Shown here: positions 1,272 to 27,237 of the stretch, one piece after another
Layout of the letters: each line of letters opens with the position of its first letter
Position numbering within the stretch: position 1 is the stretch's first letter
Sequence record: NC_048048.2
Direction: 5' to 3' (one strand)
DNA: 64,000 bases
The notes under the pieces: model-generated
What the model was told of the DNA's origin: nothing
Seen by the model: the letters and a program-made list of their open reading frames with translations, nothing else
Databases searched by the model: none
Position numbers and translations under genes: made by a program

Positions 1272-3452
1272 GTGGCCATCAGCACCGATGAAAAGGTCGA
1301 CTTCCTCTGGAAGAAGATCGTCTATGGCGCCACCAAGACGGCGAGCGCCGCCAACAAGGCTGGCTCGAACGAAGCCATCCCCTCGCCGGTGGTGGCCTTC
1401 TCCGACTACGTCTGGACGCAGTCGAACCTGATCCCGCTGAGCCCGCCGACCGACAGCACTCCGATCGTCGAGGTCTGGGTTGGTCCCGAGCGGATCAAGA
1501 TGACCAACGACCCGACGTCGCCGGTCAATCAGTCCTGGCTGGCCACCATCCTGCCGCCGGACCTGACCAGCCGCATCGGTGACTTCGTCCCGCCGGCCTT
1601 TGGCACTGGCTATGCTGTCAAGGTCTTCATCGGCGACCCGTCGACCGGTCCTGCCGCCCGTATCTTCCCCGAGACGACCAACGAAGAGTGGGTGTTCGAC
1701 TATTCTGCCGGCGTCCTCAACTTCCCCAATTCGATCCCGGCCTCCAAGACCGCCACGATCGGCACGGGCACCGTGGCCGTCGGCACCCATGGCATCTACA
1801 TCGAAGGCTACCAGTACATCGGCAAGACCGGCGGCGGCGCGGGCGAACTGGTCATCGAGAGCGGCTATGACCTGCCGCTGGGCGAGACGGCGACGGCCGG
1901 CGACGGCTCCTGGACCGACGGCGCGATCCCGCTGACCGACGACACCAAGGTCTCCGAAGCCATCGACCAGTTGAACGAGGTCTTGGGCCTGCTGGTCCCG
2001 GCCCAGCCGCCGGCCTTCCCGAACGCGGCCTTGAGCGTCTCCAACGGCACGGGCAACAGCCCGCGTCTGGCCACGGGCGTCACCGACAACTCTGGCGCCT
2101 CGACGATCACCGCCGGCTCGGCCGTCACCCGCATCACCGCCTCGGGCGTCTCGTCCAACACCTACAATGACGTTGGTCCTGGCAAGGGCGGCAATCTGGC
2201 CCTCCTGGTCAATGGCGCGATCGTCGGCCAGCGCGCCCTGGTGGGTACGGGCGACAACGGGACCTACAACGGTCTGGTCATCGCCGACCAGAAGGATTAC
2301 CCGGTCGCCACCCCCGGCTTCTGGAAGTCGATCGACATCTCGGTCAACCTCGCCGCCGCCCTGGACGGCGTCAACAGCTTCCAGCTTCAGCACAGCGGCG
2401 CCGGCTCCACCGCCAGCGTGTTCTTCGTCAAGGACAACCTGACCGCAGCGCCGGCCCTGTCGACGACCTCGGTGATCGAGCAGTCGGCCGGCGCGGTCGC
2501 CTATTCGTCCTCGGTGCCCCACTACAACACCGGCGCGGCCCTGACGGTCGCCGCCTCGATGAGCAATCTGGCCGGCGAGACCTATTACGGCGGCGCCGAC
2601 CCGCTGACCATCACCGGCACCAACAGCATCATCGCCGCCCAGACCTACGACTACGCGACCCTGGGCGTGACGACGCCGATCGCGCGCCAAACCACCACGC
2701 CGGTGGTCCTGACCCCGGTCACCGTCCAGATCAATGGCACGAACGTCCACGCCTCGGGGACCATCCAGGGCTCGGGCAAGAACGCCGCAGGCCAGTCGAC
2801 GGCGGCCAACATGGCCGCCACCATCATCAACGTCAAGCGCGGCAGCGCCGGCGCGCGCATCGACGAGATGAGCATCCCGGTCGTGGGCCTGGGCTCGCTG
2901 CCCAACGCCAACAACGCCGTGCGCGTCTCGGCTGGCTCGGGCGACACGCCCACGGGTTCGACCACCGCCTGGAACCCCGCCAATGCCCTGGCCACCCATG
3001 AGGCGGCCGTTGTCGGCGGCGCGCTCAAGCACGACCAGACCAACTACAGCACCGGCGTCCTGCCGGTGGGGCCGGACCTTTCGGTGGGGCGCAGCGGTGC
3101 GCAGTACGCCACCTTCAGCTTCAACCGCTCGGCGCGCTCGGGCTTCAAGATCGTCATCAACGGCGCCTATGCCGGCTGCTGGGTCAAGCTGCCGGGCGTT
3201 TCGACAGCCCAGCCCAATGCGCCGGGCGGCTGGTGGAACGCCTTCCAGGCCTATGACGGCGCGGGCATCCCCGGCGAAGCGGGCGACCCCAACGCCGGCT
3301 GCGCCACGGGCGCGGTCATGAACGGCGGCGCGGGGACCTTTGCGATCACCTTCGGGACCGAGTCGTCGACCAACGCCACGGGCAACGAAATCCTCGTCCG
3401 CCTCAAGCTGAACCCCGGCCAAACGGTCACGGCGCTCAGCTTCACCAACTAA
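1272..3452 (+). CDS. 726-aa beta-rich virion structural protein (module A + module B)
   Basis: AGGA RBS. N-terminus matches 3468..4160 (KVDFLWK...EEWVFDYxAGVLNF...YQYIG); C-terminus matches 1..1263. Confidence 0.85.
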   Translation: MAISTDEKVDFLWKKIVYGATKTASAANKAGSNEAIPSPVVAFSDYVWTQSNLIPLSPPTDSTPIVEVWVGPERIKMTNDPTSPVNQSWLATILPPDLTSRIGDFVPPAFGTGYAVKVFIGDPSTGPAARIFPETTNEEWVFDYSAGVLNFPNSIPASKTATIGTGTVAVGTHGIYIEGYQYIGKTGGGAGELVIESGYDLPLGETATAGDGSWTDGAIPLTDDTKVSEAIDQLNEVLGLLVPAQPPAFPNAALSVSNGTGNSPRLATGVTDNSGASTITAGSAVTRITASGVSSNTYNDVGPGKGGNLALLVNGAIVGQRALVGTGDNGTYNGLVIADQKDYPVATPGFWKSIDISVNLAAALDGVNSFQLQHSGAGSTASVFFVKDNLTAAPALSTTSVIEQSAGAVAYSSSVPHYNTGAALTVAASMSNLAGETYYGGADPLTITGTNSIIAAQTYDYATLGVTTPIARQTTTPVVLTPVTVQINGTNVHASGTIQGSGKNAAGQSTAANMAATIINVKRGSAGARIDEMSIPVVGLGSLPNANNAVRVSAGSGDTPTGSTTAWNPANALATHEAAVVGGALKHDQTNYSTGVLPVGPDLSVGRSGAQYATFSFNRSARSGFKIVINGAYAGCWVKLPGVSTAQPNAPGGWWNAFQAYDGAGIPGEAGDPNAGCATGAVMNGGAGTFAITFGTESSTNATGNEILVRLKLNPGQTVTALSFTN

Positions 3453-15839: not shown

Positions 15840-15914
15840 GCGGCTATAGCTCAGAGGTAGAGCGCCTGCTTGCCATGCAGGAGGTCGCGGGTTCGATCCC
15901 CGCTAGCCGCTCCA
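15840..15914 (+). tRNA. tRNA-Gly: tRNA-Gly(GCC)
   Basis: GCGGCTA/TAGCCGC acceptor, CCTGC-TTGCCAT-GCAGG, TTCGA, U73-CCA. Confidence 0.95.
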
Positions 15915-15936
15915 TTCTTCTTTCCCGTGCAGACGG

Positions 15937-16012
<76 letters not shown>

Positions 16013-16034
16013 CTCCTAAGCTAAGGCCAAGACG

Positions 16035-16289
16035 ATGAAAACGCACGAGTTCTGCTACTGGCTGCAAGGCCTCTTCGAGATCGCCGATCCCAAGACCCTG
16101 GACGAGAATCAGGTGAGGATCATCAAGGCCCATCTCGACATGGTCTTCCTCCACGACATCGATCAGCGCTACCCCGCCGAGCAGCAGCCGGCGCTCAACG
16201 CGATCCACAACGGCCTGAAAGTGGCCGGCAAGCCTCCCATTTCCAAACCCGCGCCGATCCCCGAGGATGGCATGCTCTTTCGCTGTTGA
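16035..16289 (+). CDS. 84-aa conserved phage hypothetical protein
   Basis: AAGG RBS; N-terminal FCYWLQGLFEI motif. Confidence 0.7.
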   Translation: MKTHEFCYWLQGLFEIADPKTLDENQVRIIKAHLDMVFLHDIDQRYPAEQQPALNAIHNGLKVAGKPPISKPAPIPEDGMLFRC

Positions 16290-16567
16290 TCAGCATGATC
16301 GACGACGAGGATGAGCTTCTCTGCGACGTCTGGGGCGATTGCGAGCCCTTTGACGAGCAGGCCCATCTCACGATCGGCGACTGCCAGTATTGCGGAGGCG
16401 TGCGCTACCACGTCAACGGCCGCTGGATGACCTGGACGAGCGCGATCCAGGACTACGTCGATCACCACCGGATCACGGGCTACAGCCAAGGCATGATCCT
16501 CGACGACCACCTGCCCGAGAGGTTCGTGCCATGCAAGACGCCAACTTCGGCTACCATATCCGCCTGA
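16286..16567 (+). CDS. ~90-aa hypothetical protein with a CxxC pair
   Basis: Overlaps the upstream stop; CQYCGG; alternative ATG at 16295. Confidence 0.55.
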   Translation: MISMIDDEDELLCDVWGDCEPFDEQAHLTIGDCQYCGGVRYHVNGRWMTWTSAIQDYVDHHRITGYSQGMILDDHLPERFVPCKTPTSATISA

Positions 16568-16791
16568 TCCCCAAGGGGGTCCTGGGCGAAATCTCCAAGA
16601 TCAAGGAGGAGTTCGCCGAGTTCGAGGACGCCATGGAGCAGGGCAGCCTGATCATGGCGCTTGTGGAGCTTTCCGACATGCAGGGCGCCATCAAGGCATG
16701 GCTGGCCAAGCATACGCCCGGCGTCACCCTCGACGACCTCAACGCTATGAGCCTCATCACCGAAAGGGCCTTCCGCAATGGACGCCGGTAG
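16531..16791 (+). CDS. MazG-like/NTP pyrophosphohydrolase-fold protein
   Basis: SKIKEEFAEFEDAMEQ...LVELSDMQGAI (EExxE...E/DxxD helical pattern). Confidence 0.6.
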   Translation: MQDANFGYHIRLIPKGVLGEISKIKEEFAEFEDAMEQGSLIMALVELSDMQGAIKAWLAKHTPGVTLDDLNAMSLITERAFRNGRR

Positions 16792-17356
16792 CTGGAAACG
16801 CCTGCATCAGGCTGTCGAGTTCTATGTCGATCGCGGCTACACCTACATCGATGCGCCCTGGGCCGTCGGTCGCAAGGTCATGGACATGACCTGCCCGCGT
16901 CCCGATCTGGCCAGTCCCCTGGAGGACAAGTTCCTGGTAGGCTCGGCCGAGCAGTCGTTCCTCGAACTGGAGACCGACACCCTGGGCACGGGGCGCTTCG
17001 TGGCGCTCACGCCGTGTTTCCGCGTCGCCGACGCCGGCCGATCGGTGAACCATTCGCCCTACTTCATGAAGGTCGAGCTTTACTCGAACCTCGCGCTGCG
17101 GCGCGAGCGCGTCCTGCGCCGGATGATCGAGGACGCCAAGGCCTGCTTCACCATGCTCGGCGCGACCAACCTCGAAGTCCATCCCATCCAGGATGAGACG
17201 GCCAAGTTCGCCCAGGACATCGTCTGGCGCGGCCTGGAACTGGGCTCCTACGGCATCCGCAAACGGCAGCACCCGGTTCTGGAAGAGGAGCACATCTGGA
17301 TTTACGGCACCGGTCTAGCCGAGCCGAGGTTCTCCCAGGCGCTCCGTCGATATTGA
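16778..17356 (+). CDS. Stand-alone class II aminoacyl-tRNA synthetase-like catalytic domain
   Basis: Motif 1 (FYVDRGYTYIDAP), motif 2 (TPCFR...H..YFMKVEL) and motif 3 (GTGLAEPRF), preceded by ELGSYG; only 192 aa, with no tRNA-binding domain. Confidence 0.75.
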   Translation: MDAGSWKRLHQAVEFYVDRGYTYIDAPWAVGRKVMDMTCPRPDLASPLEDKFLVGSAEQSFLELETDTLGTGRFVALTPCFRVADAGRSVNHSPYFMKVELYSNLALRRERVLRRMIEDAKACFTMLGATNLEVHPIQDETAKFAQDIVWRGLELGSYGIRKRQHPVLEEEHIWIYGTGLAEPRFSQALRRY

Positions 17357-17452
17357 TTGCATGTCGGTGAATGAGCCCCTACCACGCGACGCTGAGCCGG
17401 CGGCCGGCTTGCGCTGTCCGAATGGGGAAAGAAGAAGCAAGGTCTGAACTAG

Positions 17453-17893
17453 ATGTCGTCAATGATATTTCACGCTTTCGCTGATGACCTGACCCAGGGC
17501 AGGTTTGATCCGGCAAACTGCCGTTTCGGGATGCTCTTGGTGTCCAAGGGATACAACCCGGACCGACGCCAGCATCGCACGCTCCAGGACATCACCCATG
17601 AAATTTCAGGCGATGGCTACGTGCAGGGCGGGCAGGAGATGCAGATCGTCCCTGGACGGGAACTTCGTTTCGTACCGACCAAATGGGAGAAGGCGACCAT
17701 CGGCGCGCGTGGCGCAGTCGTCTACCGGGCCGGAGAGACTGCCGAGGAAAGCGGGCTGGTAGGCTACCTCGACTTCGGCGAAAGGGTCTCTGTCAAGAAG
17801 GCGAACCTGACCGTCTCGATCAGAAACCCCATCAGGATGCCAGGGGTCTATTGGGGCTCTAAACCTTCCCCGGCTGGACAACGGTCAGCCTAG
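17453..17893 (+). CDS. 146-aa paralog of 4176..4592
   Basis: FGMLLVSKGYNP...HEISGDGYVQGG and TIGARGAVVY align by eye with FKVMLVTSAYTP...NEVTGTGYTAGG and TITARAAVIY. Confidence 0.75.
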   Translation: MSSMIFHAFADDLTQGRFDPANCRFGMLLVSKGYNPDRRQHRTLQDITHEISGDGYVQGGQEMQIVPGRELRFVPTKWEKATIGARGAVVYRAGETAEESGLVGYLDFGERVSVKKANLTVSIRNPIRMPGVYWGSKPSPAGQRSA

Positions 17894-17904
17894 CTTCGGG
17901 CGCC

Positions 17905-17945
17905 GTGTCACCGATCTTGACAAGGTCTTCCAGATGTGAGATACG
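17905..17945 (+). promoter_or_regulatory. Promoter of the Glu/Asp tRNA unit
   Basis: GTGTC-N7-TTGACA (17917-17922); the -10 element is weak. Confidence 0.5.
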
Positions 17946-17952
17946 GCGCTTT

Positions 17953-18018
17953 ATGACCTTCTCGACCTTCCTTTTCCGAGAGATCGGCTCCGCGAGCCGA
18001 GATACCACCGCCTCCTAG
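17953..18018 (+). CDS. Candidate 21-aa leader peptide MTFSTFLFREIGSASRDTTAS
   Basis: ATG close to the predicted transcription start; overlaps alternative hairpins directly upstream of tRNA-Glu and tRNA-Asp. Confidence 0.4.
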   Translation: MTFSTFLFREIGSASRDTTAS

Positions 18019-18046
18019 GCTGGTGGTACGACGGCTCGCGCGATGT

Positions 18047-18123
18047 GGGCCTGTCTTCTAAATGGACTAGGAATCTCGGCTTTCAATCGAGCAATGCGGG
18101 TTCGAGCCCCGTCAGGCCTACCA
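18047..18123 (+). tRNA. tRNA-Glu: tRNA-Glu(TTC)
   Basis: GGGCCTG/CAGGCCT acceptor, CTCGG-CTTTCAA-TCGAG, CCA. Confidence 0.9.
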
Positions 18124-18149
18124 ACAATTTCCGATCGAAAGCCACCCTG

Positions 18150-18225
18150 GGCTCTAGGGTGTGAGGGTTAGCAGCGCCGGCTTGTCAGGCCGGAGGAAGG
18201 GGTTCGAGTCCCCTTAGAGTCGCCA
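18150..18225 (+). tRNA. tRNA-Asp: tRNA-Asp(GTC)
   Basis: GGCTCTA/TAGAGTC acceptor, CCGGC-TTGTCAG-GCCGG, GCCA; atypical D arm. Confidence 0.9.
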
Positions 18226-18229
18226 TTTC

Positions 18230-18580
18230 GCCCGGACGGGCACAACCAATCGAAAGCACCGGGCAAGAGCGCTTAGCGGCCTCCAAGCGCCTGGGTTACG
18301 CTGGAAACGCAGGGGTCGCCGGGTCGTGCGTAACGACAGCCCTGGTCAGTGACCGATGGTGGATAAGAAATTGGTCCCAACCTGCTGTAGGTGGTTGGCG
18401 GCGCCGGGTCCGAGAACCCGGACGTATTTCCCGCTGTGGCGCTAGTAGGATGCGCTAGTGGCCATGCCATCGAGGCTCACCGCATGGGGGCCGGCGGAAG
18501 TAGCTCAGGTCCGCCTAGAGTGAAAACCCACATCATGTCGTCGGCCCCACTGCTCTGCATGCGCCGCCGACGCCCTTTCG
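18230..18580 (+). ncRNA. Candidate structured non-coding RNA of unknown family, co-transcribed with tRNA-Asp
   Basis: No credible ORF. Stems GCGCTT/AAGCGC, CCAACC/GGTTGG, CCGGGT/ACCCGG, GGGGCCG/CGGCCCC; ends at a terminator. Confidence 0.4.
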
Positions 18581-18581
18581 G

Positions 18582-18623
18582 AACCCTCGGTCAGGCCAGC
18601 CCTCACCGAGGGTTTTCCTTTTT
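18582..18623 (+). terminator. Intrinsic terminator
   Basis: AACCCTCGGT/ACCGAGGGTT stem followed by TTCCTTTTT. Confidence 0.7.
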
Positions 18624-18632
18624 ATAGAGGCC

Positions 18633-18690
18633 GTGCATTTTTTATTGCACCGTTTCTTGACACGCCTGATGACCTGTGTCATAGGCTACA
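18633..18690 (+). promoter_or_regulatory. Promoter of the 12-tRNA operon with an upstream inverted repeat
   Basis: GTGCA-N8-TGCAC palindrome (18633-18650), then TTCTTGACA (-35 at 18657-18662). Confidence 0.55.
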
Positions 18691-18738
18691 TCATCAACAG
18701 CCCAGATCGGGCGCATTTTCTCCGCCGGAACAAGGTCC

Positions 18739-18858
18739 ATGACCCGCATCCATACCACGCTGCCGACCGCCAAGCCCGCCTCCACCGGCGCGCTGACGCT
18801 CGCCTCGTGGCCGGCGTCGAGCAAGCCGCTATTGCGGCACTCAGCGGTTCTCGCCTAA
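18739..18858 (+). CDS. 39-aa leader peptide of the 12-tRNA operon (MTRIHTTLPTAKPASTGALTLASWPASSKPLLRHSAVLA)
   Basis: AAGG RBS; 33 of 38 non-start residues are P/T/K/L/H/A/S/W, exactly the amino acids of the 12 downstream tRNAs. Confidence 0.75.
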   Translation: MTRIHTTLPTAKPASTGALTLASWPASSKPLLRHSAVLA

Positions 18859-18970
18859 CAGGCGACCGCTCCGGGTGCCGCTTCTAAGCCGCACCCGATC
18901 TCTCCACGACACCTCCCAACTGTCCAGGCGAACCGGGTGCTCCTGATCTCTCAGGAGATCGCTCCTATTT
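18834..18970 (+). promoter_or_regulatory. Putative transcription attenuator (alternative hairpins) before tRNA-Pro
   Basis: GCGGCACTC 18834-42 pairs with GGGTGCCGC 18873-81. CGGGTGC at 18872-78 and at 18934-40 both pair with GCACCCG 18891-97. Terminal hairpin CTCCTGA-TCTC-TCAGGAG with a weak U tail. Confidence 0.55.
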
Positions 18971-18977
18971 GGTTCAT

Positions 18978-19053
18978 CTTGGCGTAGCGCAGTGGTAGCG
19001 CACTCGGTTTGGGACCGAGGGGTCGTGGGTTCGAATCCTCACCGCCGAGACCA
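18978..19053 (+). tRNA. tRNA-Pro: tRNA-Pro(TGG)
   Basis: CTTGGCG/CGCCGAG acceptor, CTCGG-TTTGGGA-CCGAG, ACCA. Confidence 0.9.
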
Positions 19054-19126
19054 TTTCACCCTCCGCCGGCTTTGACCGGACGATCCGCGTGCGCCTGGGC
19101 GCCGGCGGAGGCGTGTTCTTCGTTGT

Positions 19127-19203
19127 GCCGGTGTAGCTCAGCCCGGTAGAGCGTCTGCCTCGTAAGCAGGGGGTCCCTGGTTCAAATCCAGGTGTCGGCA
19201 CCA
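19127..19203 (+). tRNA. tRNA-Thr: tRNA-Thr(CGT)
   Basis: GCCGGTG/TGTCGGC acceptor (3 G-U pairs), loop CTCGTAA, ACCA. Confidence 0.85.
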
Positions 19204-19257
19204 CAAAGAACACGATCGCAAGATCAAAGAGAAGGAACAGACAAGACACAGACTTTC

Positions 19258-19344
19258 GGGCGAGTAGCCGAGTGGTTAAAGGCACCTGACTCTTAATCAG
19301 GCGTGAGAAATCCTACGTGGGTTCGAATCCCACCTCGCCCTCCA
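19258..19344 (+). tRNA. tRNA-Lys: tRNA with Lys anticodon CTT on a long-variable-arm (type II) body
   Basis: GGGCGAG/CTCGCCC acceptor, CCTGA-CTCTTAA-TCAGG, ~16-nt variable region, U73-CCA. Confidence 0.8.
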
Positions 19345-19424
19345 TTGATACCATGTTCCCGCTCGGGAACATTCTGGCCAGGACAGGGGTCTTGGGATGA
19401 GAATGTTCCCGATCGGGATCACGG

Positions 19425-19511
19425 GCGGGTGTGGCGAAGTTGGTAGCCGCGCGAGTCTCAGGTACTCGTGGTCGAAAGGCCGGGGAGGTTCGAATCCTCT
19501 CACCCGCACCA
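19425..19511 (+). tRNA. tRNA-Leu: tRNA-Leu(CAG)
   Basis: GCGGGTG/CACCCGC acceptor, CGAGT-CTCAGGT-ACTCG, long variable arm, ACCA. Confidence 0.93.
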
Positions 19512-19522
19512 ATCTGAACTGG

Positions 19523-19609
19523 GCCGAGATGGCGGAATGGTAGACGCGCCGGCTTCAAGTCCCGTGTGCCCGCAAGGGCGTCCGAGTTCGACCCTCGGTC
19601 TCGGCACCA
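19523..19609 (+). tRNA. tRNA-Leu: tRNA-Leu(CAA), imperfect anticodon stem
   Basis: GCCGAGA/TCTCGGC acceptor, loop TTCAAGT, long variable arm, ACCA. Confidence 0.85.
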
Positions 19610-19650
19610 ATCAGATTGGCGATGGAAAGCGAAAGTCATGCAAGGACAGT

Positions 19651-19738
19651 GCGGAAGTGGCGTAACGGTAGCCGCGCCAGATTGAGTATCTGGTGATCTG
19701 AAAGGGTCGTGGAGGTTCGAGTCCTCTCTTCCGCACCA
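19651..19738 (+). tRNA. tRNA-Leu: tRNA-Leu(GAG)
   Basis: GCGGAAG/CTTCCGC acceptor, CCAGA-TTGAGTA-TCTGG (U37), ACCA. Confidence 0.9.
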
Positions 19739-19771
19739 AGACAAGGAGAAGAAAAGACAGGTTTGGTTTGT

Positions 19772-19843
19772 GCTGAAATGGCCTAGCGGTTAAGGCGCTG
19801 CATTGTGGATGCAGACACGATGGTTCGAATCCATCTTTCAGTG
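19772..19843 (+). tRNA. tRNA-His: tRNA-His(GTG), no G-1 and no encoded CCA
   Basis: GCTGAAA/TTTCAGT acceptor, CTGCA-TTGTGGA-TGCAG; separated from tRNA-Ala by a single C. Confidence 0.85.
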
Positions 19844-19844
19844 C

Positions 19845-19920
19845 GGGGATATAGCTCAGTTGGTAGAGCAGTTGCTTTGCAAGCATCAGGTCGTCGGTTC
19901 GAGCCCGACTATCTCCACCA
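19845..19920 (+). tRNA. tRNA-Ala: tRNA-Ala(TGC)
   Basis: GGGGATA/TATCTCC acceptor with G3:U70, loop TTTGCAA, ACCA. Confidence 0.95.
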
Positions 19921-19985
19921 GACGAAGGGACCCAGGGCGCGGCGCCGGATCGGCGACCACCTGGGTCCGTGACAACAAGACAACT

Positions 19986-20077
19986 GGAGGGCTGGCAGAG
20001 TCTGGCTGAACGCACCCGTTTCGAACGCGGGCAGGGGTGAAAGTCCCTCGGGGGTTCAAATCCCTCGCCCTCCGCCA
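19986..20077 (+). tRNA. tRNA-Ser: tRNA-Ser(CGA)
   Basis: GGAGGGC/GCCCTCC acceptor, loop TTCGAAC, long variable arm, GCCA. Confidence 0.93.
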
Positions 20078-20095
20078 ACACGAGCCGGCATCTAT

Positions 20096-20187
20096 GGAAG
20101 GATGGCTGAGTCCGGCTGAAAGCGCCCACCTGGAACGTGGGTAGGCCTTCGCGGGCCTCGGGGGTTCAAATCCCTCTCCTTCCGCCA
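20096..20187 (+). tRNA. tRNA-Ser: tRNA-Ser(GGA)
   Basis: GGAAGGA/TCCTTCC acceptor, CCCAC-CTGGAAC-GTGGG, GCCA. Confidence 0.93.
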
Positions 20188-20221
20188 ATACCGAGCCGGC
20201 GCGGATCGCCGGCCGAAGCGA

Positions 20222-20311
20222 GGTGGGTTGACCGAGTGGTAAGGTGCGCGCTTGCTAAGCGCAGGTCAGCCTGGAAGGGCTGCGGGGGTTCGATCCCCTC
20301 ACCCACCGCCA
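20222..20311 (+). tRNA. tRNA-Ser: tRNA-Ser(GCT)
   Basis: GGTGGGT/ACCCACC acceptor, loop TTGCTAA, long variable arm, GCCA. Confidence 0.93.
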
Positions 20312-20326
20312 TCGCTTCGACGATGC

Positions 20327-20402
20327 AGGAGTATAGCTCAACTGGTAGAGCGCTGGTCTCCAAAACCAGAGGTTGGGGGTTCGAGTCCCTCTGCTCCTGC
20401 CA
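20327..20402 (+). tRNA. tRNA-Trp: tRNA-Trp(CCA)
   Basis: AGGAGTA/TGCTCCT acceptor, CTGGT-CTCCAAA-ACCAG, GCCA. Confidence 0.95.
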
Positions 20403-20446
20403 ACACCGTTTCATCGATCCACAGCACCAAGGAAAGGAGGACACCG

Positions 20447-20677
20447 ATGAGAAATCCCACCATGACCCAATGCCGTATGACGCGAGGCGAGACCGGTGTC
20501 CTGATCTCGTGGATTCCGACCGAGTTCGCCCAGGTCGGCCGCAAGATCGACCTGAAGGAAAAGGACTTCTGGTCGCGCGGCTGGATCGTCGACAAGGTCT
20601 GGACCACGATGGACGCCAAGGCGGTCGCCGAGCGCGGCCACGACTACCGCATCCACCGTCGGGCCACCGACGTCTAA
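20447..20677 (+). CDS. 76-aa hypothetical protein at the end of the tRNA operon
   Basis: Strong AAGGAGG RBS before ATG at 20447. Confidence 0.75.
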   Translation: MRNPTMTQCRMTRGETGVLISWIPTEFAQVGRKIDLKEKDFWSRGWIVDKVWTTMDAKAVAERGHDYRIHRRATDV

Positions 20678-20713
20678 GAGGTTGGCCCTGCCATGTGTAG
20701 GAGCCGCATCGGG

Positions 20714-20743
20714 GCCGCCCAGGCATGACCTGGGCGGCTTTTG
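20714..20743 (+). terminator. Intrinsic terminator of the tRNA operon
   Basis: GCCGCCCAGG/CCTGGGCGGC stem followed by TTTTG. Confidence 0.8.
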
Positions 20744-20748
20744 TCGCG

Positions 20749-21156
20749 TTAGAGGGTAACGAGTTCGATGCCTCTGGTATGGGACACGACGAGCCAGTCG
20801 CGCCCAGTGGATTTCAGGAAAATCGCGATGGGAACCTTGGACGCGTCATTGTCTTTCGTGATGCCTAGGGCCACGCCAGAATCGTTCCCGTTGATGACGA
20901 AATTGGGGACTGACCGGTCCTCCATGCTGATCCCAGCGAGCTTGATAGCTTGTCCGTTGGGGGCATTAATGTTGAAATGCAGGCGAATGAACAATTCGTC
21001 GCCTACTTCCTGACCACCCGCGATTTGAGCGGCGTAGATGCCGGCTTCATCGCCGCCAGTTACGACGTCGACGATTTTTTGACCGTCCGGGTTGATAATG
21101 GGCCATTGGAAATAAGGGGCGTCAGCCTGGGTGAGCAGAATGGTGTGCCGAGACAT
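20749..21156 (-). CDS. 135-aa hypothetical protein with visibly lower GC
   Basis: AAAAGGAGA RBS; AT-richer codons than neighbouring genes. Confidence 0.7.
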   Translation of the reverse strand: MSRHTILLTQADAPYFQWPIINPDGQKIVDVVTGGDEAGIYAAQIAGGQEVGDELFIRLHFNINAPNGQAIKLAGISMEDRSVPNFVINGNDSGVALGITKDNDASKVPIAIFLKSTGRDWLVVSHTRGIELVTL

Positions 21157-21323
21157 GCGTATCTCCTTTTAGGTACTAGCCTTCGGACGGCGGGTGAACG
21201 GCGCCAGCGGGCTGGCCCAGCTACCGGCCCAGCGCCGGCAGCCCCTCCTACCCGATCCATGTGACAAGTCTATCTAAGATCGAGTTTTATCCACAGCAGC
21301 TTTAACGCGAGTATAGGCGCACG

Positions 21324-21350
21324 AAAAAGGGCTCCCCGGAGGGAGCCCTT
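21324..21350 (-). terminator. Intrinsic terminator ending the large minus-strand RNA (possibly bidirectional)
   Basis: GGGCTCCC/GGGAGCCC stem, 4-nt loop, TTTTT on the minus strand. Confidence 0.8.
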
Positions 21351-22190
21351 ATTGTTTGAAAGGTTGAGACACTAGGCCTTTCTCGACGAGACCTCAGGGA
21401 TTATCCTTGCTCAGGTTCCCCTGGGAGTCCAGGAGCCTTTCGGCTTCTCTGTCCCGCCAACGACGGTCATTTTAGGTCCACCACAGACCGTCCTGTTAAA
21501 CTACTCAGCCTCTCCGCTACCATCAAAGGCTGGCCGGCCCTCGAAGGAAGTTTCCTGACACTCACCTCAGAACCTTGCGGGGTCCTGCGATGCCCCTGCT
21601 AAGCCGAAGCCCAGGGGACGTAGTCGTCTATCGTTCAACAGCGGACTGACTTTCGCTTGTGCTTCGTCAGCCAATGATGATCGGGGTTGGTTTAAGCCCC
21701 GTGCTACCTTCCCTAGTGAAGACGTGCAGTACCTTGGGCTTCGTGGCTTTTGGCCACAAAATACCCTACGCCTCCGTGTCCCTCAGATCGGAACGGTCCT
21801 GCCCGAAAATCCCTCCAGATGCTTTTCACACCCGGCGTGACTTCCAGAAGAACTGGGTCTCGCCCTAAGCCGGTATCTCTCCGGCCTCGAACTGTCGTAG
21901 TAGGCTGTCGCCCAGCTACCCCCTACACCTGAATCCTCGCCGACAAGGCCGCCTTGATGTGTTCCTCCCGGCGGATATCACCCCGCACCAGAGCGCCTGT
22001 CGGCGCCTTTCGAGACAGAACACGGCCCCTTCGACTATCCTCCACCCCCAGTTTTTACCTGGGTATGAAAGACGGGCTGGTTAGGCCCGGTCTTCGATGC
22101 CTGCTTGAGTGAGCCCGGTTTCCCAGGTGGCGAAGGATAGGGCCTCCGCCTCGTTGCCGGGTTGCCCCGGCCGCGTCGCTCTCAAGCGAT
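21351..22190 (-). ncRNA. ~840-nt highly structured non-coding RNA, probably GOLLD family
   Basis: Bounded by its own promoter and terminator; no credible ORF; many tetraloop-capped stems on the minus strand (CCGGG-GCAA-CCCGG, AGCC-GAAA-GGCT, GGGC-TTCG-GCTT). Size and position beside phage tRNAs fit GOLLD; the family call has not been tested with a covariance model. Confidence 0.65.
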
Positions 22191-22196
22191 GACTGG

Positions 22197-22225
22197 GTTG
22201 TAGACGGACGATTTTCCGGGGTCAA
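22197..22225 (-). promoter_or_regulatory. Promoter of the large ncRNA
   Basis: TTGACC-17 nt-TACAAC on the minus strand; predicted start ~22190. Confidence 0.75.
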
Positions 22226-22270
22226 CAGGCATTTCGAACTTTTTTCGAAAAAGTTTCGATCGACGTCCCC

Positions 22271-22311
22271 GTGACGCGTTTCTTGACCCGACATCTCCCT
22301 TAGGGCAGAAG
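22271..22311 (+). promoter_or_regulatory. Divergent rightward promoter
   Basis: GTGAC-N7-TTGACC-17 nt-CAGAAG. Confidence 0.55.
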
Positions 22312-22663
22312 GGTTTCGAGGGCGCCACGCGTAGTGGAAGAATCCGTGCTCCCGCCCAAGGCGCGGCCGTGTAGCGACACAGTCCTGCACATCAGGCCAA
22401 CCCTAAGCCGCAGCGCGTTGTCTACCCGCATGCCTCGGGCAATAGGCAAATCCCGGTCCGGCGGACATCCCTCGAAGCTGGAGGAGATAACCGGAGGATA
22501 CCGTCCCCGTGGGACGGATGGAAGGAAGGGATTTTGTCGATCCCTGGTAGGCCGTCCAGGCTGTAGCGCTGCTGTCTGGGTCCGGGACCGCCAAATTCGG
22601 CGAAACGCGAAAAGAGCCCGGCTGGTTTCGCGGCTGGCCGGGCTCACTACCCCTGGAAACCTC

Positions 22664-22987
22664 ATGATCGACAACACCTTCGTCCTCGCGGATGGCCCGC
22701 TGTACCTCACCTTGGAGGCGGCCTTGGAGGCGCCCGGTGCGATCTACACCCACGTCAAGAAGGGCGGCATCTATCGCCGTATGGGCGAGGCCAAGTACGC
22801 AGGCGAGGCGGCGGCCGAGACCCTGGAAGGCGTGATGATGGCCGTCTACGAGCATCTCTACCCATACGAGCACTCTTTCTTTGTTCGTCCTCAAAGTGAG
22901 TTTGTCGAGGTCGTACGGACCCAGCACGGCGAGCACCGCCGTTTCGTCTTTCACACCAATGAGATACTCACCGTCCTCGACACCTGA
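22664..22987 (+). CDS. DUF1653-like small protein (107 aa)
   Basis: GIYTHVKKGGIY...MAVYEHLY...FVRPQSEF...RRF pattern; ATG at 22664. Confidence 0.7.
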   Translation: MIDNTFVLADGPLYLTLEAALEAPGAIYTHVKKGGIYRRMGEAKYAGEAAAETLEGVMMAVYEHLYPYEHSFFVRPQSEFVEVVRTQHGEHRRFVFHTNEILTVLDT

Positions 22988-23022
22988 CATGCGTCAAAAG
23001 CCTTGTCATACAAGGCGTCACG

Positions 23023-23063
23023 GTGTCGCCGATCTTGACTTGACACTCGATCTCCGGTAGAAG
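23023..23063 (+). promoter_or_regulatory. Promoter
   Basis: GTGTC-N7-TTGACT-17 nt-TAGAAG. Confidence 0.65.
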
Positions 23064-23089
23064 GCAGACCTGCTTTCAAGGAAATTGTG

Positions 23090-25438
23090 ATGGCCAAGCC
23101 GCTGATCGCGGCGACGAAGCGTCAGCGCTTGTCGCCTGCGCATGTCCCCCTGATCCCTACCGACATCGAACTCAGCAGCACCCAGGTGCCAGCCGGTAGC
23201 CCTGCGGGCACCACGATTGGCATATTGACGGCCAAGCCCGAGGTGGGCGAGATCGACTTTGTCCTTCTCGACGACGCCGGTGGCAAGTTCGCCATCGACG
23301 GCGCCCGGCTGGTGATCGGCCCGGTCGCCTCGGCTGGCGCGACGCTCAACATCACCGTGCGCGCCATCGCCCGCTTCTCCAAGCTCTGGGTCGACAAGGT
23401 CTTCGGCGTCGAGGTCCAGACCGTGGTCGCCCCGATCATCCTGTCGCCGACCAATCCGACCATCCTGGAAAACAGCCCCGCAGGTACTCAAGTCGCGGCG
23501 ATCTCCTCGCCCGGCTCGACCTTGGCGCTGACCAACAATGCCGGCAATCGCTTTGCCTTGAACGGCGTCAACCTCCAGGCCGGCAGCGTGCCGACCGACT
23601 ACGAGACCGCCACCAGCCACGACGTCACCATCTCGGCCACCAACAATGGCGACACCATTTCCGAGATCGTCACTGTCCAGGTGATCAATGTCGTCGAGAT
23701 CACCAACATCACCCTGTCAGCCAACACCATCGCCGAGAACTCGGCGGCCGGAACAGTCGTGGGCCAACTGGCCTCGGTCCCGGCTGGCGCGACGCTCACC
23801 CTGACCAACAACGCCGGCAATCGCTTCGCCATCGACGGCAGCAACCGGCTGGTCGCGGGCAGCGTCGCAACCGATTACGAGACCAACACCACACACGACG
23901 TGACGGTGCGAGCCACCAAGGGTCCTGACGTCTACGACAAGACCTTCACGATCAACGTCACCAACGTCAACGAACTGACCGATATCACCCTGTCGGCCAA
24001 CACCATCGCCGAGAACTCGGCGGCCGGGACGGTCGTGGGCAATCTCGCCAGCGTGATCGCCGGCGCCTCGTTCACCGTGACCAGCCAGACGCCGTCTGGC
24101 GCCTACTTCACGGTCAACGGCTCCAATCAGCTTGTCGCCGGTGCCACGCCGACCAACTACGAGGCAAACACCTCCCACTCGGTCACCATCCAGGCGACGC
24201 GCGGGACCGACACCTTCTCCAAGACCTTCACCGTCAACGTGACCAACGTCACCGAGATCACCGACTTCACCCTGTCGGCCAACACCATCACCGAGGGCGC
24301 GGCCCAGACCACCCAGGTGGGCCTCTTCACCTCGACGCCGACGGGCGCGACCTACGCCCTGGCGCCGGACAACACCGCCGGCACGCTGTTCCAGGTTTCC
24401 GGCACGGCCCTCCAGGCCGGCTCGACCGCCACCAACTACGAGAACGCCACCAGCCACGTCGTGAAGATTCGCGCCACCCGAGGCGGTGAGACCCTCGACA
24501 AGAACTTCACGATCAACGTCACCAACGTGGTCGAACTGAGCGACTTCACTCTCTCGGGTTCCTCGATCGACGAGAATTCCGGCCAAGGTACGGGCGTGGG
24601 CACCCTGTCCTCCACGCCGACCGGCGCGACCTACAGCTTCGTGGCGCCCAACAGCAGCGCCGGCAGCCGCTTCCAGATCAGCGGCAATGCGCTCCAGGCT
24701 GGCCCCGTGTCGACTGATTACGAGTCGGCGACCAGCCACGCCATCACCATCCGCGCCTCTCGCGGCGGCGAGACGATGGACAAGAACTTCACAATCACCG
24801 TCAACGACATCAACGAAGCGCCACCACCGCCGGACCTGGACAGCTTCAGCCTGTCGGGCAACTCCATTGATGAGAACTCGGGCGCGGGCACCTTTGTGGG
24901 CACCTTCTCGTCGAGTCCGTCGGGCGCTAGCTATGTCTTGACCAATTCGGCCGGCGGGCGTTTCGCTATTTCTGGCACGTCCCTCGTCGCGGGGTCGACG
25001 CCGACGGACTATGAGACAGCTACCAGCCATTCGATCTCGGTTAATGCTACGCGTGGAGCCACCACGCTGAGCGACAGCTTCACGATCAACGTCAACAACC
25101 TCGCCGAAGGCGGCGGGGGTAGTCAGACGCTGACCGTCAGCAAGAATAAAGGCAATTTGACAGGTTCAATCGTGGGGGGAACTACCCCTCCCACCACGTC
25201 AGAAACGATTACGGCGACTGCGTCTGGTGGCACGGCTCCCTATTCCTACGACTGGGAATATGTCAGCGGCGACACCCTGATCTTCCTGGCGAACGTCTCG
25301 CCCCAAGAAGCCTATTGGTACCTGGGCAACGGCGATCGTCCAGCCAACCGCACCGCCATCTGGCGATGCAAGGCGACCGACGCGGTCGGAAATTACGGCT
25401 ATACCTCCAACACTCAGATCACCCTCACGTGGTCATGA
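23090..25438 (+). CDS. Cadherin-like repeat protein (about seven ~92-aa repeats plus a C-terminal domain)
   Basis: Repeats of LSxNTIxENSxxGTxVG...DYExxTSHxVTIxA...KxFTINVxNVxE; AAGGA RBS. Confidence 0.85.
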   Translation: MAKPLIAATKRQRLSPAHVPLIPTDIELSSTQVPAGSPAGTTIGILTAKPEVGEIDFVLLDDAGGKFAIDGARLVIGPVASAGATLNITVRAIARFSKLWVDKVFGVEVQTVVAPIILSPTNPTILENSPAGTQVAAISSPGSTLALTNNAGNRFALNGVNLQAGSVPTDYETATSHDVTISATNNGDTISEIVTVQVINVVEITNITLSANTIAENSAAGTVVGQLASVPAGATLTLTNNAGNRFAIDGSNRLVAGSVATDYETNTTHDVTVRATKGPDVYDKTFTINVTNVNELTDITLSANTIAENSAAGTVVGNLASVIAGASFTVTSQTPSGAYFTVNGSNQLVAGATPTNYEANTSHSVTIQATRGTDTFSKTFTVNVTNVTEITDFTLSANTITEGAAQTTQVGLFTSTPTGATYALAPDNTAGTLFQVSGTALQAGSTATNYENATSHVVKIRATRGGETLDKNFTINVTNVVELSDFTLSGSSIDENSGQGTGVGTLSSTPTGATYSFVAPNSSAGSRFQISGNALQAGPVSTDYESATSHAITIRASRGGETMDKNFTITVNDINEAPPPPDLDSFSLSGNSIDENSGAGTFVGTFSSSPSGASYVLTNSAGGRFAISGTSLVAGSTPTDYETATSHSISVNATRGATTLSDSFTINVNNLAEGGGGSQTLTVSKNKGNLTGSIVGGTTPPTTSETITATASGGTAPYSYDWEYVSGDTLIFLANVSPQEAYWYLGNGDRPANRTAIWRCKATDAVGNYGYTSNTQITLTWS

Positions 25439-26490: not shown

Positions 26491-26562
26491 GCTTCAGTAG
26501 CTCAGTGGTAGAGCGCCTCGGTGACATCGAGGAGGTCGTAGGTTCAAGTCCTACCTGAAGCA
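26491..26562 (+). tRNA. tRNA-Val: tRNA-Val(GAC), no encoded CCA
   Basis: GCTTCAG/CTGAAGC acceptor, CCTCG-GTGACAT-CGAGG; one C before tRNA-Ile. Confidence 0.88.
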
Positions 26563-26563
26563 C

Positions 26564-26639
26564 GCTAGGTTAGCTCAGATGGTAGAGCACCCGATCGATA
26601 ATCGGGATGTCGCAGGTTCGAGCCCTGCACCTAGCACCA
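26564..26639 (+). tRNA. tRNA-Ile: tRNA-Ile(GAT)
   Basis: GCTAGGT/ACCTAGC acceptor, CCCGA-TCGATAA-TCGGG (C33), ACCA. Confidence 0.9.
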
Positions 26640-26755
26640 AACACTCTATACGGTTTGGCGTATATTCAAGAAATATACGCAATAGCGTATAATCCAGTAG
26701 ACAAATACGGAATTCCGTATATTCGATGAGGTGAAGAACGAGAGGAACAAGATAC

Positions 26756-26830
26756 GGGCCGGTAGCTCAGTGGTAGAGCGCTGCTGTCACATAGCAGATG
26801 TCGAGTGTTCGAGACACTCCCGGCCCACCA
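26756..26830 (+). tRNA. tRNA-Val: tRNA-Val(CAC)
   Basis: GGGCCGG/CCGGCCC acceptor, CTGCT-GTCACAT-AGCAG, ACCA. Confidence 0.9.
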
Positions 26831-26835
26831 GTTGT

Positions 26836-26909
26836 TGGGGCATGGTGTAATGGTAACACGTCGGACTTTGGTTCCGAAATTCCAGGTTCGAGTCCTGGTG
26901 CCCCAGCCA
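26836..26909 (+). tRNA. tRNA-Gln: tRNA-Gln(TTG)
   Basis: TGGGGCA/TGCCCCA acceptor, TCGGA-CTTTGGT-TCCGA, GCCA. Confidence 0.93.
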
Positions 26910-26967
26910 ACTTACGAAGACAACGAGGACTGATGTGACCAGTCCAGTGGAGAAGAGACAGGTTTGT

Positions 26968-27042
26968 TCCCGAGTAGCTCAGCGGTAGAGCGGCTCGCTG
27001 TTAACGAGAAGGTCGCAGGTTCGAATCCTGCCTCGGGAGCCA
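26968..27042 (+). tRNA. tRNA-Asn: tRNA-Asn(GTT)
   Basis: TCCCGAG/CTCGGGA acceptor, loop CTGTTAA, GCCA. Confidence 0.95.
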
Positions 27043-27056
27043 ATACTTTTCTCCAC

Positions 27057-27135
27057 GCCCGGTTAGCTCAGCGGAATTAAGAGCAGACGCCTACGAAGCG
27101 TAAGGTCGGGGGTTCGAATCCCTCACCGGGTGCCA
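27057..27135 (+). tRNA. tRNA-Arg: tRNA-Arg(ACG)
   Basis: GCCCGGT/ACCGGGT acceptor, loop CTACGAA, GCCA. Confidence 0.92.
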
Positions 27136-27161
27136 TTTCTCTGCAAGGTTGCGTACCTTGC

Positions 27162-27237
27162 GCATGGATAGCTCAGATGGTAGAGCGCCGGCGTGAAGCC
27201 CCGGAGGCCAGTGGTTCGATCCCACTTCCATGCACCA
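27162..27237 (+). tRNA. tRNA-Phe: tRNA-Phe(GAA), atypical anticodon loop
   Basis: GCATGGA/TCCATGC acceptor, CCGG(C)-GTGAAGC-(C)CCGG, ACCA. Confidence 0.85.

Follow-up and report, generated by a model that had tools for sequence, protein, structure and literature searches.

Caulobacter phage CcrSC, the source of the interval analysed here, is a Bertelyvirus (subfamily Dolichocephalovirinae) with a genome of 317 kb. Coordinates refer to the window, the whole 64,000-nt stretch of DNA that was examined; positions 21300–22300 are identical (100%) to MH588547.2 83300–84300, and a window position is the record position minus 62000. The GenBank annotation is blank for 1.5 kb, from the end of gp146c at 21156 to the start of gp147 at 22664. 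Within this gap the minus strand is predicted to encode a large RNA. As the first-pass annotation had described, it lies between two tRNA operons and is transcribed opposite to both, with the array of 16 tRNA genes 0.9 kb downstream of the RNA and the array of seven 4.3 kb upstream. The features of the region are collected in Table 1.

Table 1. Features of the RNA and its surroundings, in window coordinates
Feature	Position	Strand	Basis and remarks
tRNA array, 16 genes	15840–20402	plus	ARAGORN/Rfam
gp146c	20749–21156	minus	GenBank; same strand as the RNA, 165 nt past its terminator
Intrinsic terminator	21322–21350	minus	10-bp G+C-rich hairpin (21327–21350), then UUUUU
Last core hairpin	21359–21381	minus	Loop ...GUCUCA...; stem covaries (AU/GC, GC/CG)
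3′ domain, conserved GOLLD core	21361–21776	minus	cmscan with RF02032, model 1–416; published listing
Long-range core helix and enclosed hairpins	21493–21642	minus	21633–21642 pairs with 21493–21501
Single P21 arm	21525–21542	minus	GAGGGC-CGGCCA-GCCUUU; loop with self-complementary GGCC
Variable linker, 74 nt	21643–21716	minus	Model 63–137; small hairpin at 21682–21701
5′ domain, ~414 nt, clade-specific, multi-stem	21777–22190	minus	RNAalifold, single-fold test, P1 across genera
−10 region TCTACAAC	22197–22204	minus	Contains TACAAC at 22202–22197; 17 nt from TTGACC
−35 element TTGACC	22220–22225	minus	Sequence and pattern match
gp147	22664–22987	plus	GenBank
tRNA array, 7 genes	26491–27237	plus	ARAGORN/Rfam

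Promoter, terminator and transcript

The interval forms a unit free of ORFs, bounded by a sigma-73-like promoter and by an intrinsic terminator, and the first-pass annotation was right to regard it as a complete transcription unit. The consensus of Caulobacter sigma-73 promoters is roughly TTGACgS, 10–14 nt, GCTANAWC. The pattern TTGACN{16,19}CTANAWC, derived from this consensus, has one match in the 64-kb window (0.04 expected), and this is located at the promoter of the RNA; a generic E. coli-type promoter scan found nothing. The element is invariant among five Bertelyviruses, TTGACC is also kept in phiCbK and Bajun, and the −10 region recurs at equal spacing in two more distant relatives of CcrSC, as GCTAGAAC in phage phiCbK and as GCTAAACC in Brevundimonas phage vB_BgoS-Bajun (Bajun). 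The first transcribed bases TCRTCGCTT are common to CcrSC, phiCbK and Bajun. Judged by the position of the promoter, transcription probably starts at the A at ~22190, and during infection it would be carried out by the host RNA polymerase as the sigma-73 holoenzyme.

The stem of the terminator varies in sequence among the phages with its pairing kept. In RB23, phiCbK and Bajun the RNA likewise finishes with a corresponding hairpin followed by a T-run, at an equal distance past the last conserved motif. From the positions of promoter and terminator the RNA is predicted to run on the minus strand from ~22190 to ~21323, giving a length of ~868 nt that is close to the ~840 nt originally estimated. 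A discrete and stable transcript with roughly these ends is very likely.

Sequence from the body of the RNA turns up in public RNA libraries. A 1-kb stretch containing the RNA is present in 24 public runs, at least six of which are labelled as RNA (soil and freshwater metatranscriptomes, and the transcriptome of one organism), with four more guessed to be RNA. The contigs of four RNA libraries were placed on 20400–23400; they are undirected and of low depth, and DNA is possible in RNA libraries. All the long contigs fall within 21362–22159, with 96.6–100% identity, and gp145, gp146c, the non-coding block upstream of the RNA, gp147 and gp148 are uncovered save for one 35-nt piece of low identity. 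A stable and abundant non-coding RNA would be expected to leave such a sharp restriction of the contigs to its body. The adjacent non-coding block occurs in DNA-type runs only, plus one run of unknown type. Three contigs from different runs end at 21362–21370, at the end of the conserved core and before the terminator hairpin; this may reflect 3′ trimming, or just low depth.

That the interval is instead an overlooked protein-coding gene, or an extended leader of gp146c, is barely credible. It is true that gp146c follows the terminator on the same strand, but a strong and conserved terminator stands between the two, and the RNA contigs end before it and leave gp146c uncovered. RB23 keeps the same RNA despite a different set of downstream genes. 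There is no ORF longer than 69 amino acids inside 21324–22225, and all reading frames of the interval are disrupted by 1- and 2-base indels among related phages.

Relationship to the GOLLD family

GOLLD RNA (Rfam RF02032) is an established family (Weinberg et al. 2009). The 3′ half of the CcrSC RNA is an end-to-end homologue of the GOLLD core. When cmscan was run in E-value mode, the GOLLD model aligned over its full length (1–416 of 416) with 21361–21776 on the minus strand, scoring 120.1 bits with E = 2.1e-32 and a bias of 0.0. The Rfam gathering score for GOLLD is 150 bits, which is an operational cut-off and no biological feature. Because the score of CcrSC is below this value the RNA is missed by a default Rfam scan, and a scan of the whole window at gathering thresholds reported tRNAs alone. 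The GenBank and RefSeq records of CcrSC and its relatives are blank over the same 1.5 kb, and a default scan leaves this gap unfilled. The homologues in RB23 and Bajun each score 104 bits, and that of phiCbK is above the cut-off with 165 bits.

The motif at the 3′ end of the GOLLD match led to 107 metagenomic loci. All contain the GGGAA...AUAAUCC hairpin with covarying stems, together with the ...GUCUCA loop, and the ten that were checked by Rfam were all GOLLD and all flanked by tRNAs. Within the checked set the A+T-richer lake copies score 190–300 bits, and two high-GC copies score 127 and 137 bits; a sub-threshold score is thus a trait of divergent G+C-rich members rather than of non-membership. 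The CcrSC copy itself differs from the typical GOLLD in composition, with 56–58% G+C compared with 41–48% in the high-scoring lake copies.

The interval is already present in the literature. MH588547.2:c83776-83361, corresponding to window 21361–21776, is included in the GOLLD alignment of Supplementary File 3 of Kretsch et al. (Nature 2025), where phage genomes were searched with the Rfam model at E ≤ 1e-5. The same alignment also contains phiCbK, Ccr32, Ccr34, CcrBL9, C1, J4 and Bajun (Kretsch et al. 2025). The CcrSC locus is therefore a known member of the family and not a new class, and a GOLLD RNA in an alphaproteobacterial phage is not new. Since the family, its presence in Caulobacter phages and this very interval have been published, finding it in CcrSC adds little; what is newly defined for the Dolichocephalovirinae copies is the full-length boundaries, the promoter and the terminator.

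The first-pass annotation had proposed a new large RNA class should the GOLLD model fail, and this did not come about; only the gathering score was missed, and the homology holds. A new class of structured RNA that has no relation to GOLLD would fit with the RNA not being reported at the Rfam gathering threshold, and with a 5′ half that has no detectable sequence relatives beyond the Dolichocephalovirinae. Against this stand the full-length, unbiased match to the model, core motifs that are common to the 107 metagenomic GOLLDs, a phiCbK homologue that exceeds the threshold and a locus that is already catalogued as GOLLD. In addition, a variable 5′ region is a described property of GOLLD (Kretsch et al. 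2025). We give a new class next to no weight. Homology of the CcrSC RNA with GOLLD is close to certain, and with strong confidence the best overall explanation of 21323–22190 on the minus strand is the GOLLD-family RNA gene of CcrSC.

Searches with the models of both GOLLD and ROOL had been proposed, and only the former matched. ROOL is likewise a large phage RNA found near tRNA islands, and forms an RNA-only nanocage (Kretsch et al. 2025), but it is unrelated to the CcrSC RNA in sequence and fold. Its model has no match in the window at gathering level, nor in 20400–23200 at E values up to 10, and the Rfam scans found nothing of other large RNA families at the locus. Two DNA-pattern scans of a viral contig collection, one with a core motif and the other with the promoter and 5′ end, matched nothing but CcrSC, CcrBL9 and a single phiCbK-like contig, and so added no intermediate relatives.

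Structure of the 3′ and 5′ domains

In GOLLD RNA the 3′ region is conserved universally, whereas the 5′ region, which makes up a domain of its own, is conserved less well (Kretsch et al. 2025). The CcrSC RNA shares this two-domain organization and the family length of ~800–870 nt; its core at the 3′ end is conserved, its 5′ domain is less so, and its linker is variable. Like other members it is phage-encoded and located inside a tRNA island. All the core helices are present save one arm, including the long-range helix and the hairpin with the CAAAA loop, as well as the GGGAA...AUAAUCC hairpin and the terminal ...UCUCA loop.

The fold is markedly stable on the predicted strand. The minimum free energy of the minus strand is −381.6 kcal/mol (z = −7.6 relative to dinucleotide shuffles), and the plus strand has z = −2.9. 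RNAalifold, given CcrSC, CcrBL9, RB23 and BL47 (83–95% identity), predicts 264 pairs, 25 of which have compensatory double changes. It recovers helices of the Rfam structure independently, comprising the first stem with the CAAAA-loop hairpin, the long-range helix and the terminal hairpin. A less circular test used a fold predicted from CcrSC alone, on which the substitutions of RB23 were then scored. In this fold 15 pairs are doubly changed yet still paired in RB23 (14 of them in the 5′ half), compared with 1–3 doubly compensated pairs in controls where the 3′ partner was slid by 1–3 nt. A further 38 pairs are broken in RB23, as expected because a single-sequence fold is imperfect. The covariation that had been proposed as a check on the RNA was thus obtained by both approaches, although its power is limited because there are only ~3 independent lineages.

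The long-range helix of the 3′ domain is predicted independently by the Rfam model and by RNAalifold, and carries compensatory changes (UA/GU and AU/UA). Within the core, doubly compensated pairs are found in the first stem, in the long-range helix and the hairpin next to it, and in the terminal hairpin, over the same ~3 lineages. The region of P20 and P21 has an alternative fold; there is no sequence variation there to choose between the two.

The linker of CcrSC (21643–21716) contains no tRNA according to ARAGORN or Rfam. Linker tRNAs do occur elsewhere, as a tRNA-Gly(TCC) in phiCbK and as an embedded tRNA in one metagenomic copy. The small hairpin in the CcrSC linker was considered as a relic of a tRNA, and this was dropped on account of an unconvincing alignment to the phiCbK tRNA-Gly.

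The principal departure from the typical core is at P21. The second sister hairpin on the three-way junction (P21b, model 246–263) is deleted in CcrSC and in RB23. Bajun also has one P21 arm, phiCbK has two, and both were present in five of five typical GOLLDs inspected. The CGGCCA loop of the retained arm is identical to that of the first arm (P21a) of a metagenomic GOLLD scoring 288 bits.

The 5′ domain is built around helix P1, formed by the pairing of 22181–22187 with 22103–22109. P1 encloses three hairpins, two of which are GNRA-capped. It covaries across three genera (GC/CG and AU/UA/GC), and one of the enclosed hairpins is GNRA-capped in all three despite differing stem sequences. When sequence profiles were used, that of the 5′ half matched the Dolichocephalovirinae copies only, while that of the 3′ half recovered many of the metagenomic GOLLDs. 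The CcrSC 5′ domain bears no resemblance in sequence to those of other GOLLDs, and a domain of its type is present at none of the 107 metagenomic loci, so that these do not raise the power of covariation for this half. As a structured domain the 5′ half evolves separately, and the phiCbK-like phages and Bajun have it too.

The consensus fold contains 25 hairpins, and among those in the body of the RNA two have strict GNRA loops and one has a UUCG loop. Further loops of the GAAA and CGCAA types appear under the Rfam structure. The initial description of stems dense in GNRA and UUCG caps holds as to the presence of such caps and overstates their density, with strict tetraloops in the body on three of the 25 hairpins.

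Assembly, relatives and possible function

The structure of GOLLD env-38 has been determined by cryo-EM (PDB 9MEE). It is a 14-mer cage of 380 Å diameter with the linker inside (Kretsch et al. 2025). The two half-shells, of seven subunits each, are joined by self-pairing of loops L21a and L21b (contacts B8 and B9) and by one A-minor contact (Kretsch et al. 2025). By homology with env-38, folding of the CcrSC RNA would yield two domains, and its copies would probably assemble among themselves into a large homo-oligomeric cage. In it the variable linker would point into the lumen, with the subunits bridged by self-complementary loops, CGGCCA among them.

We have equated P21a and P21b with L21a and L21b of the cryo-EM structure by position and loop sequence, an inferred mapping in which bridge residues 656–657 were placed using ~816 of the 833 nt of env-38. 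If this mapping is right, the CcrSC RNA would keep B8 and be unable to form B9, because P21b is missing. The quaternary form may accordingly differ, since the P21b loop makes one of the half-cage contacts in env-38. A closed cage like that of env-38 is slightly favoured. On a more tentative reading, which we consider possible and hold with rather low confidence, the Bertelyvirus and Bajun copies are a reduced form of GOLLD, with one arm and no linker tRNA, and perhaps with another quaternary state such as a 7-mer bowl left open or a cage held shut by one GGCC kissing loop. If so, setting CcrSC against the two-armed phiCbK copy with its linker tRNA, in the host that they share, would reveal the parts on which GOLLD depends.

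Close relatives are the GOLLD RNAs of phiCbK and Bajun. The GOLLD RNA of phiCbK, a Shapirovirus (JX163858.1:105042-105528), comes from the subfamily and host genus of CcrSC. It has the same sigma-73-type promoter, a homologous 5′ domain in which P1 covaries and an equally placed terminator, and it differs from CcrSC in its higher score, its pair of P21 arms and its linker tRNA. The Bajun RNA (ON529858.1:c191902-191484) resembles that of CcrSC in its sub-threshold score, single P21 arm, linker without a tRNA, and architecture of promoter and terminator. It is the sole strong match to the CcrSC 3′ domain outside the Bertelyviruses in a single-sequence search (E = 6.8e-14). Its host belongs to another genus, and the P21 loop is UUAGCG.

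The missing arm and tRNA could alternatively be read as marks of a decaying GOLLD remnant that is transcribed but inert. The sub-threshold score, the deletion of P21b and the linker without a tRNA would be in keeping with this. No GOLLD was found beside the tmRNA of the related phages Rogue, BL10 and Colossus, where the tmRNA locus was searched, and this hints that the RNA is dispensable in the subfamily. However, the full length, the promoter and the terminator are kept among Bertelyviruses despite 17% sequence divergence, and the substitutions are concentrated at compensated stem positions. Moreover, the retained P21 arm has exactly the loop seen in a high-scoring GOLLD, and the RNA reaches an abundance at which RNA libraries from the environment yield contigs of it. 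Decay is thus very unlikely.

As to function, the leading idea is that the cage might sequester or scaffold a macromolecule of host or phage, such as tRNA or the ribosome. Encapsulation of tRNA and binding of ribosomes have both been raised as possibilities for GOLLD in the literature. The first-pass annotation had suggested a role in tRNA handling or protection; such a role might for example be the caging or scaffolding of phage tRNAs against host anticodon nucleases. The position of the RNA among 23 phage tRNA genes, the tRNAs that flank all GOLLD loci checked, the tRNAs embedded in the linkers of phiCbK and of one metagenomic copy, and the published suggestion of encapsulation are consistent with this. 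Yet co-location is the sole basis of the argument (guilt by association), and the literature names ribosome binding equally. In this clade the covalent attachment of a tRNA is evidently optional, since the linkers of CcrSC, RB23 and Bajun have none. The tRNA-sensing attenuators that had been placed nearby did not materialize. No T-box or other tRNA-sensing element was detected near the locus; the gathering-level scan of the window gave no T-box-like match, and none of the tRNA-sensing RNA families gave a relevant match at E values up to 10 in 20400–23200 and 22195–22700. A specific job in handling or protecting tRNA is therefore unlikely, and for any specific tRNA-related function the prospect is at best poor.

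Caulobacter vibrioides CB15 and its phages provide a non-pathogenic, genetically tractable system in which the function of the GOLLD cage could be studied. It is a good place for such tests because natural variants exist, phiCbK with two arms and a linker tRNA, and CcrSC with one arm and no tRNA, together with the tmRNA loci of Rogue, BL10 and Colossus that have no GOLLD.

The proteins encoded near the RNA are uninformative, comprising a DUF1653 protein, a cadherin-like repeat protein and PHROGs without assigned function, and a synteny search based on gp147 reaches the Bertelyviruses only. The block upstream of the RNA (22260–22663) has no match to known RNA families in Rfam. It was considered as a diverged permuted tmRNA, and this was rejected, as neither Rfam nor ARAGORN gave a signal and the alignment was unconvincing. 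It comprises ~400 nt of non-coding sequence that is conserved in the Bertelyviruses and apparently structured. What fills the slot beside GOLLD differs among these phages; in the Bertelyviruses it contains this block, unrelated to tmRNA, whereas the GOLLD RNA of phiCbK stands back to back with a permuted tmRNA gene and that of Bajun adjoins one.

A conserved non-coding block between GOLLD and gp147

In the Caulobacter phage CcrSC a second conserved block free of open reading frames is found between the promoter of the large phage RNA gene GOLLD and the start codon of gp147. The block is confined to Bertelyviruses, among which it is 85–100% identical, and a protein-coding role is excluded by indels. 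On the plus strand RNAalifold predicts 128 base pairs, at least eight of them with compensatory changes. The z-score of the minimum free energy is −1.95 for the plus strand and −0.53 for the minus strand. Rfam gives no match for the block, and it is present in DNA-type sequencing runs only, with none of the RNA-labelled runs containing it. It could represent either a structured gp147 leader or an unknown RNA.

Between the GOLLD −35 element and the block is an imperfect palindrome, near-invariant across five phages. It could be a UP element, or an operator common to divergent promoters; a second TTGACC motif lies a short distance inside the block. At the opposite end a long hairpin immediately precedes the ribosome-binding region of gp147. 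Read on the minus strand, this hairpin precedes UUUU and resembles a terminator; no minus-strand gene able to feed it is annotated within the next 7 kb.

Features in CcrSC (window positions, without prefix) and at related GOLLD loci
Feature	Position	Strand	Remarks
tRNA-Lys(ctt)	19258-19344		87 nt
Palindrome TCGAAACTTTTTCGAAAAAAGTTCGA	22234-22259		A+T-rich; immediately upstream of GOLLD −35 element
Conserved block	22260-22663		
Second TTGACC	~22284-22289		faces opposite way to GOLLD −35 element
Hairpin GAGCCCGGC...GCCGGGCUC	22605-22645		
gp148	23090-25438		782 aa; repeated cadherin-like domains
tRNA-Ala(tgc)	47455-47548	minus	94 nt; ARAGORN
Permuted tmRNA, phiCbK	L008:1716-2034	minus	two-piece
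tRNA-Gly(TCC), phiCbK	L008:2608-2680		within GOLLD linker
Permuted tmRNA, Bajun	L009:3436-3748	plus	two-piece
tRNA, metagenomic GOLLD	L049:1605-1667		within linker of a GOLLD with 63% G+C
GOLLD and class A RNase P RNA, metagenomic contig	L089:1008-1472 and 2631-2997		GOLLD 137 bits

Permuted tmRNA genes beside GOLLD

In phiCbK-like phages and the Brevundimonas phage Bajun, GOLLD and a permuted tmRNA gene are arranged back to back; the position to compare in CcrSC is that of the conserved block. The phiCbK records carry no annotation for this tmRNA gene. Searching with blastn finds matches to it in Shapiro-, Poindexter- and Colossusviruses and in Brevundimonas phages, and none in Bertelyviruses. 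A tmRNA fragment also adjoins GOLLD on a metagenomic contig (L075).

Beyond gp147 lies gp148, whose homologue in CcrBL9 is annotated as 'T1SS secreted agglutinin RTX'. The related phage Rogue has a cadherin-like protein close to its tmRNA locus.

tRNAs and RNase P RNA

The GOLLD linkers of phiCbK and of one metagenomic GOLLD each contain a tRNA; those of CcrSC, RB23 and Bajun have none embedded. On a further metagenomic contig GOLLD, six tRNAs and a bacterial class A RNase P RNA (106.5 bits, exceeding its cut-off) all fall inside 2.6 kb; this RNase P RNA may be phage-borne, within a tRNA island.

In CcrSC the Rfam tRNA model at its gathering score reports nothing for the tRNA-Ala(tgc) interval; the ARAGORN call there may be false, or the tRNA may be interrupted or atypical. 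In length the tRNA-Lys(ctt) falls into the class of Leu and Ser tRNAs, those bearing a long variable arm, which is atypical for lysine.
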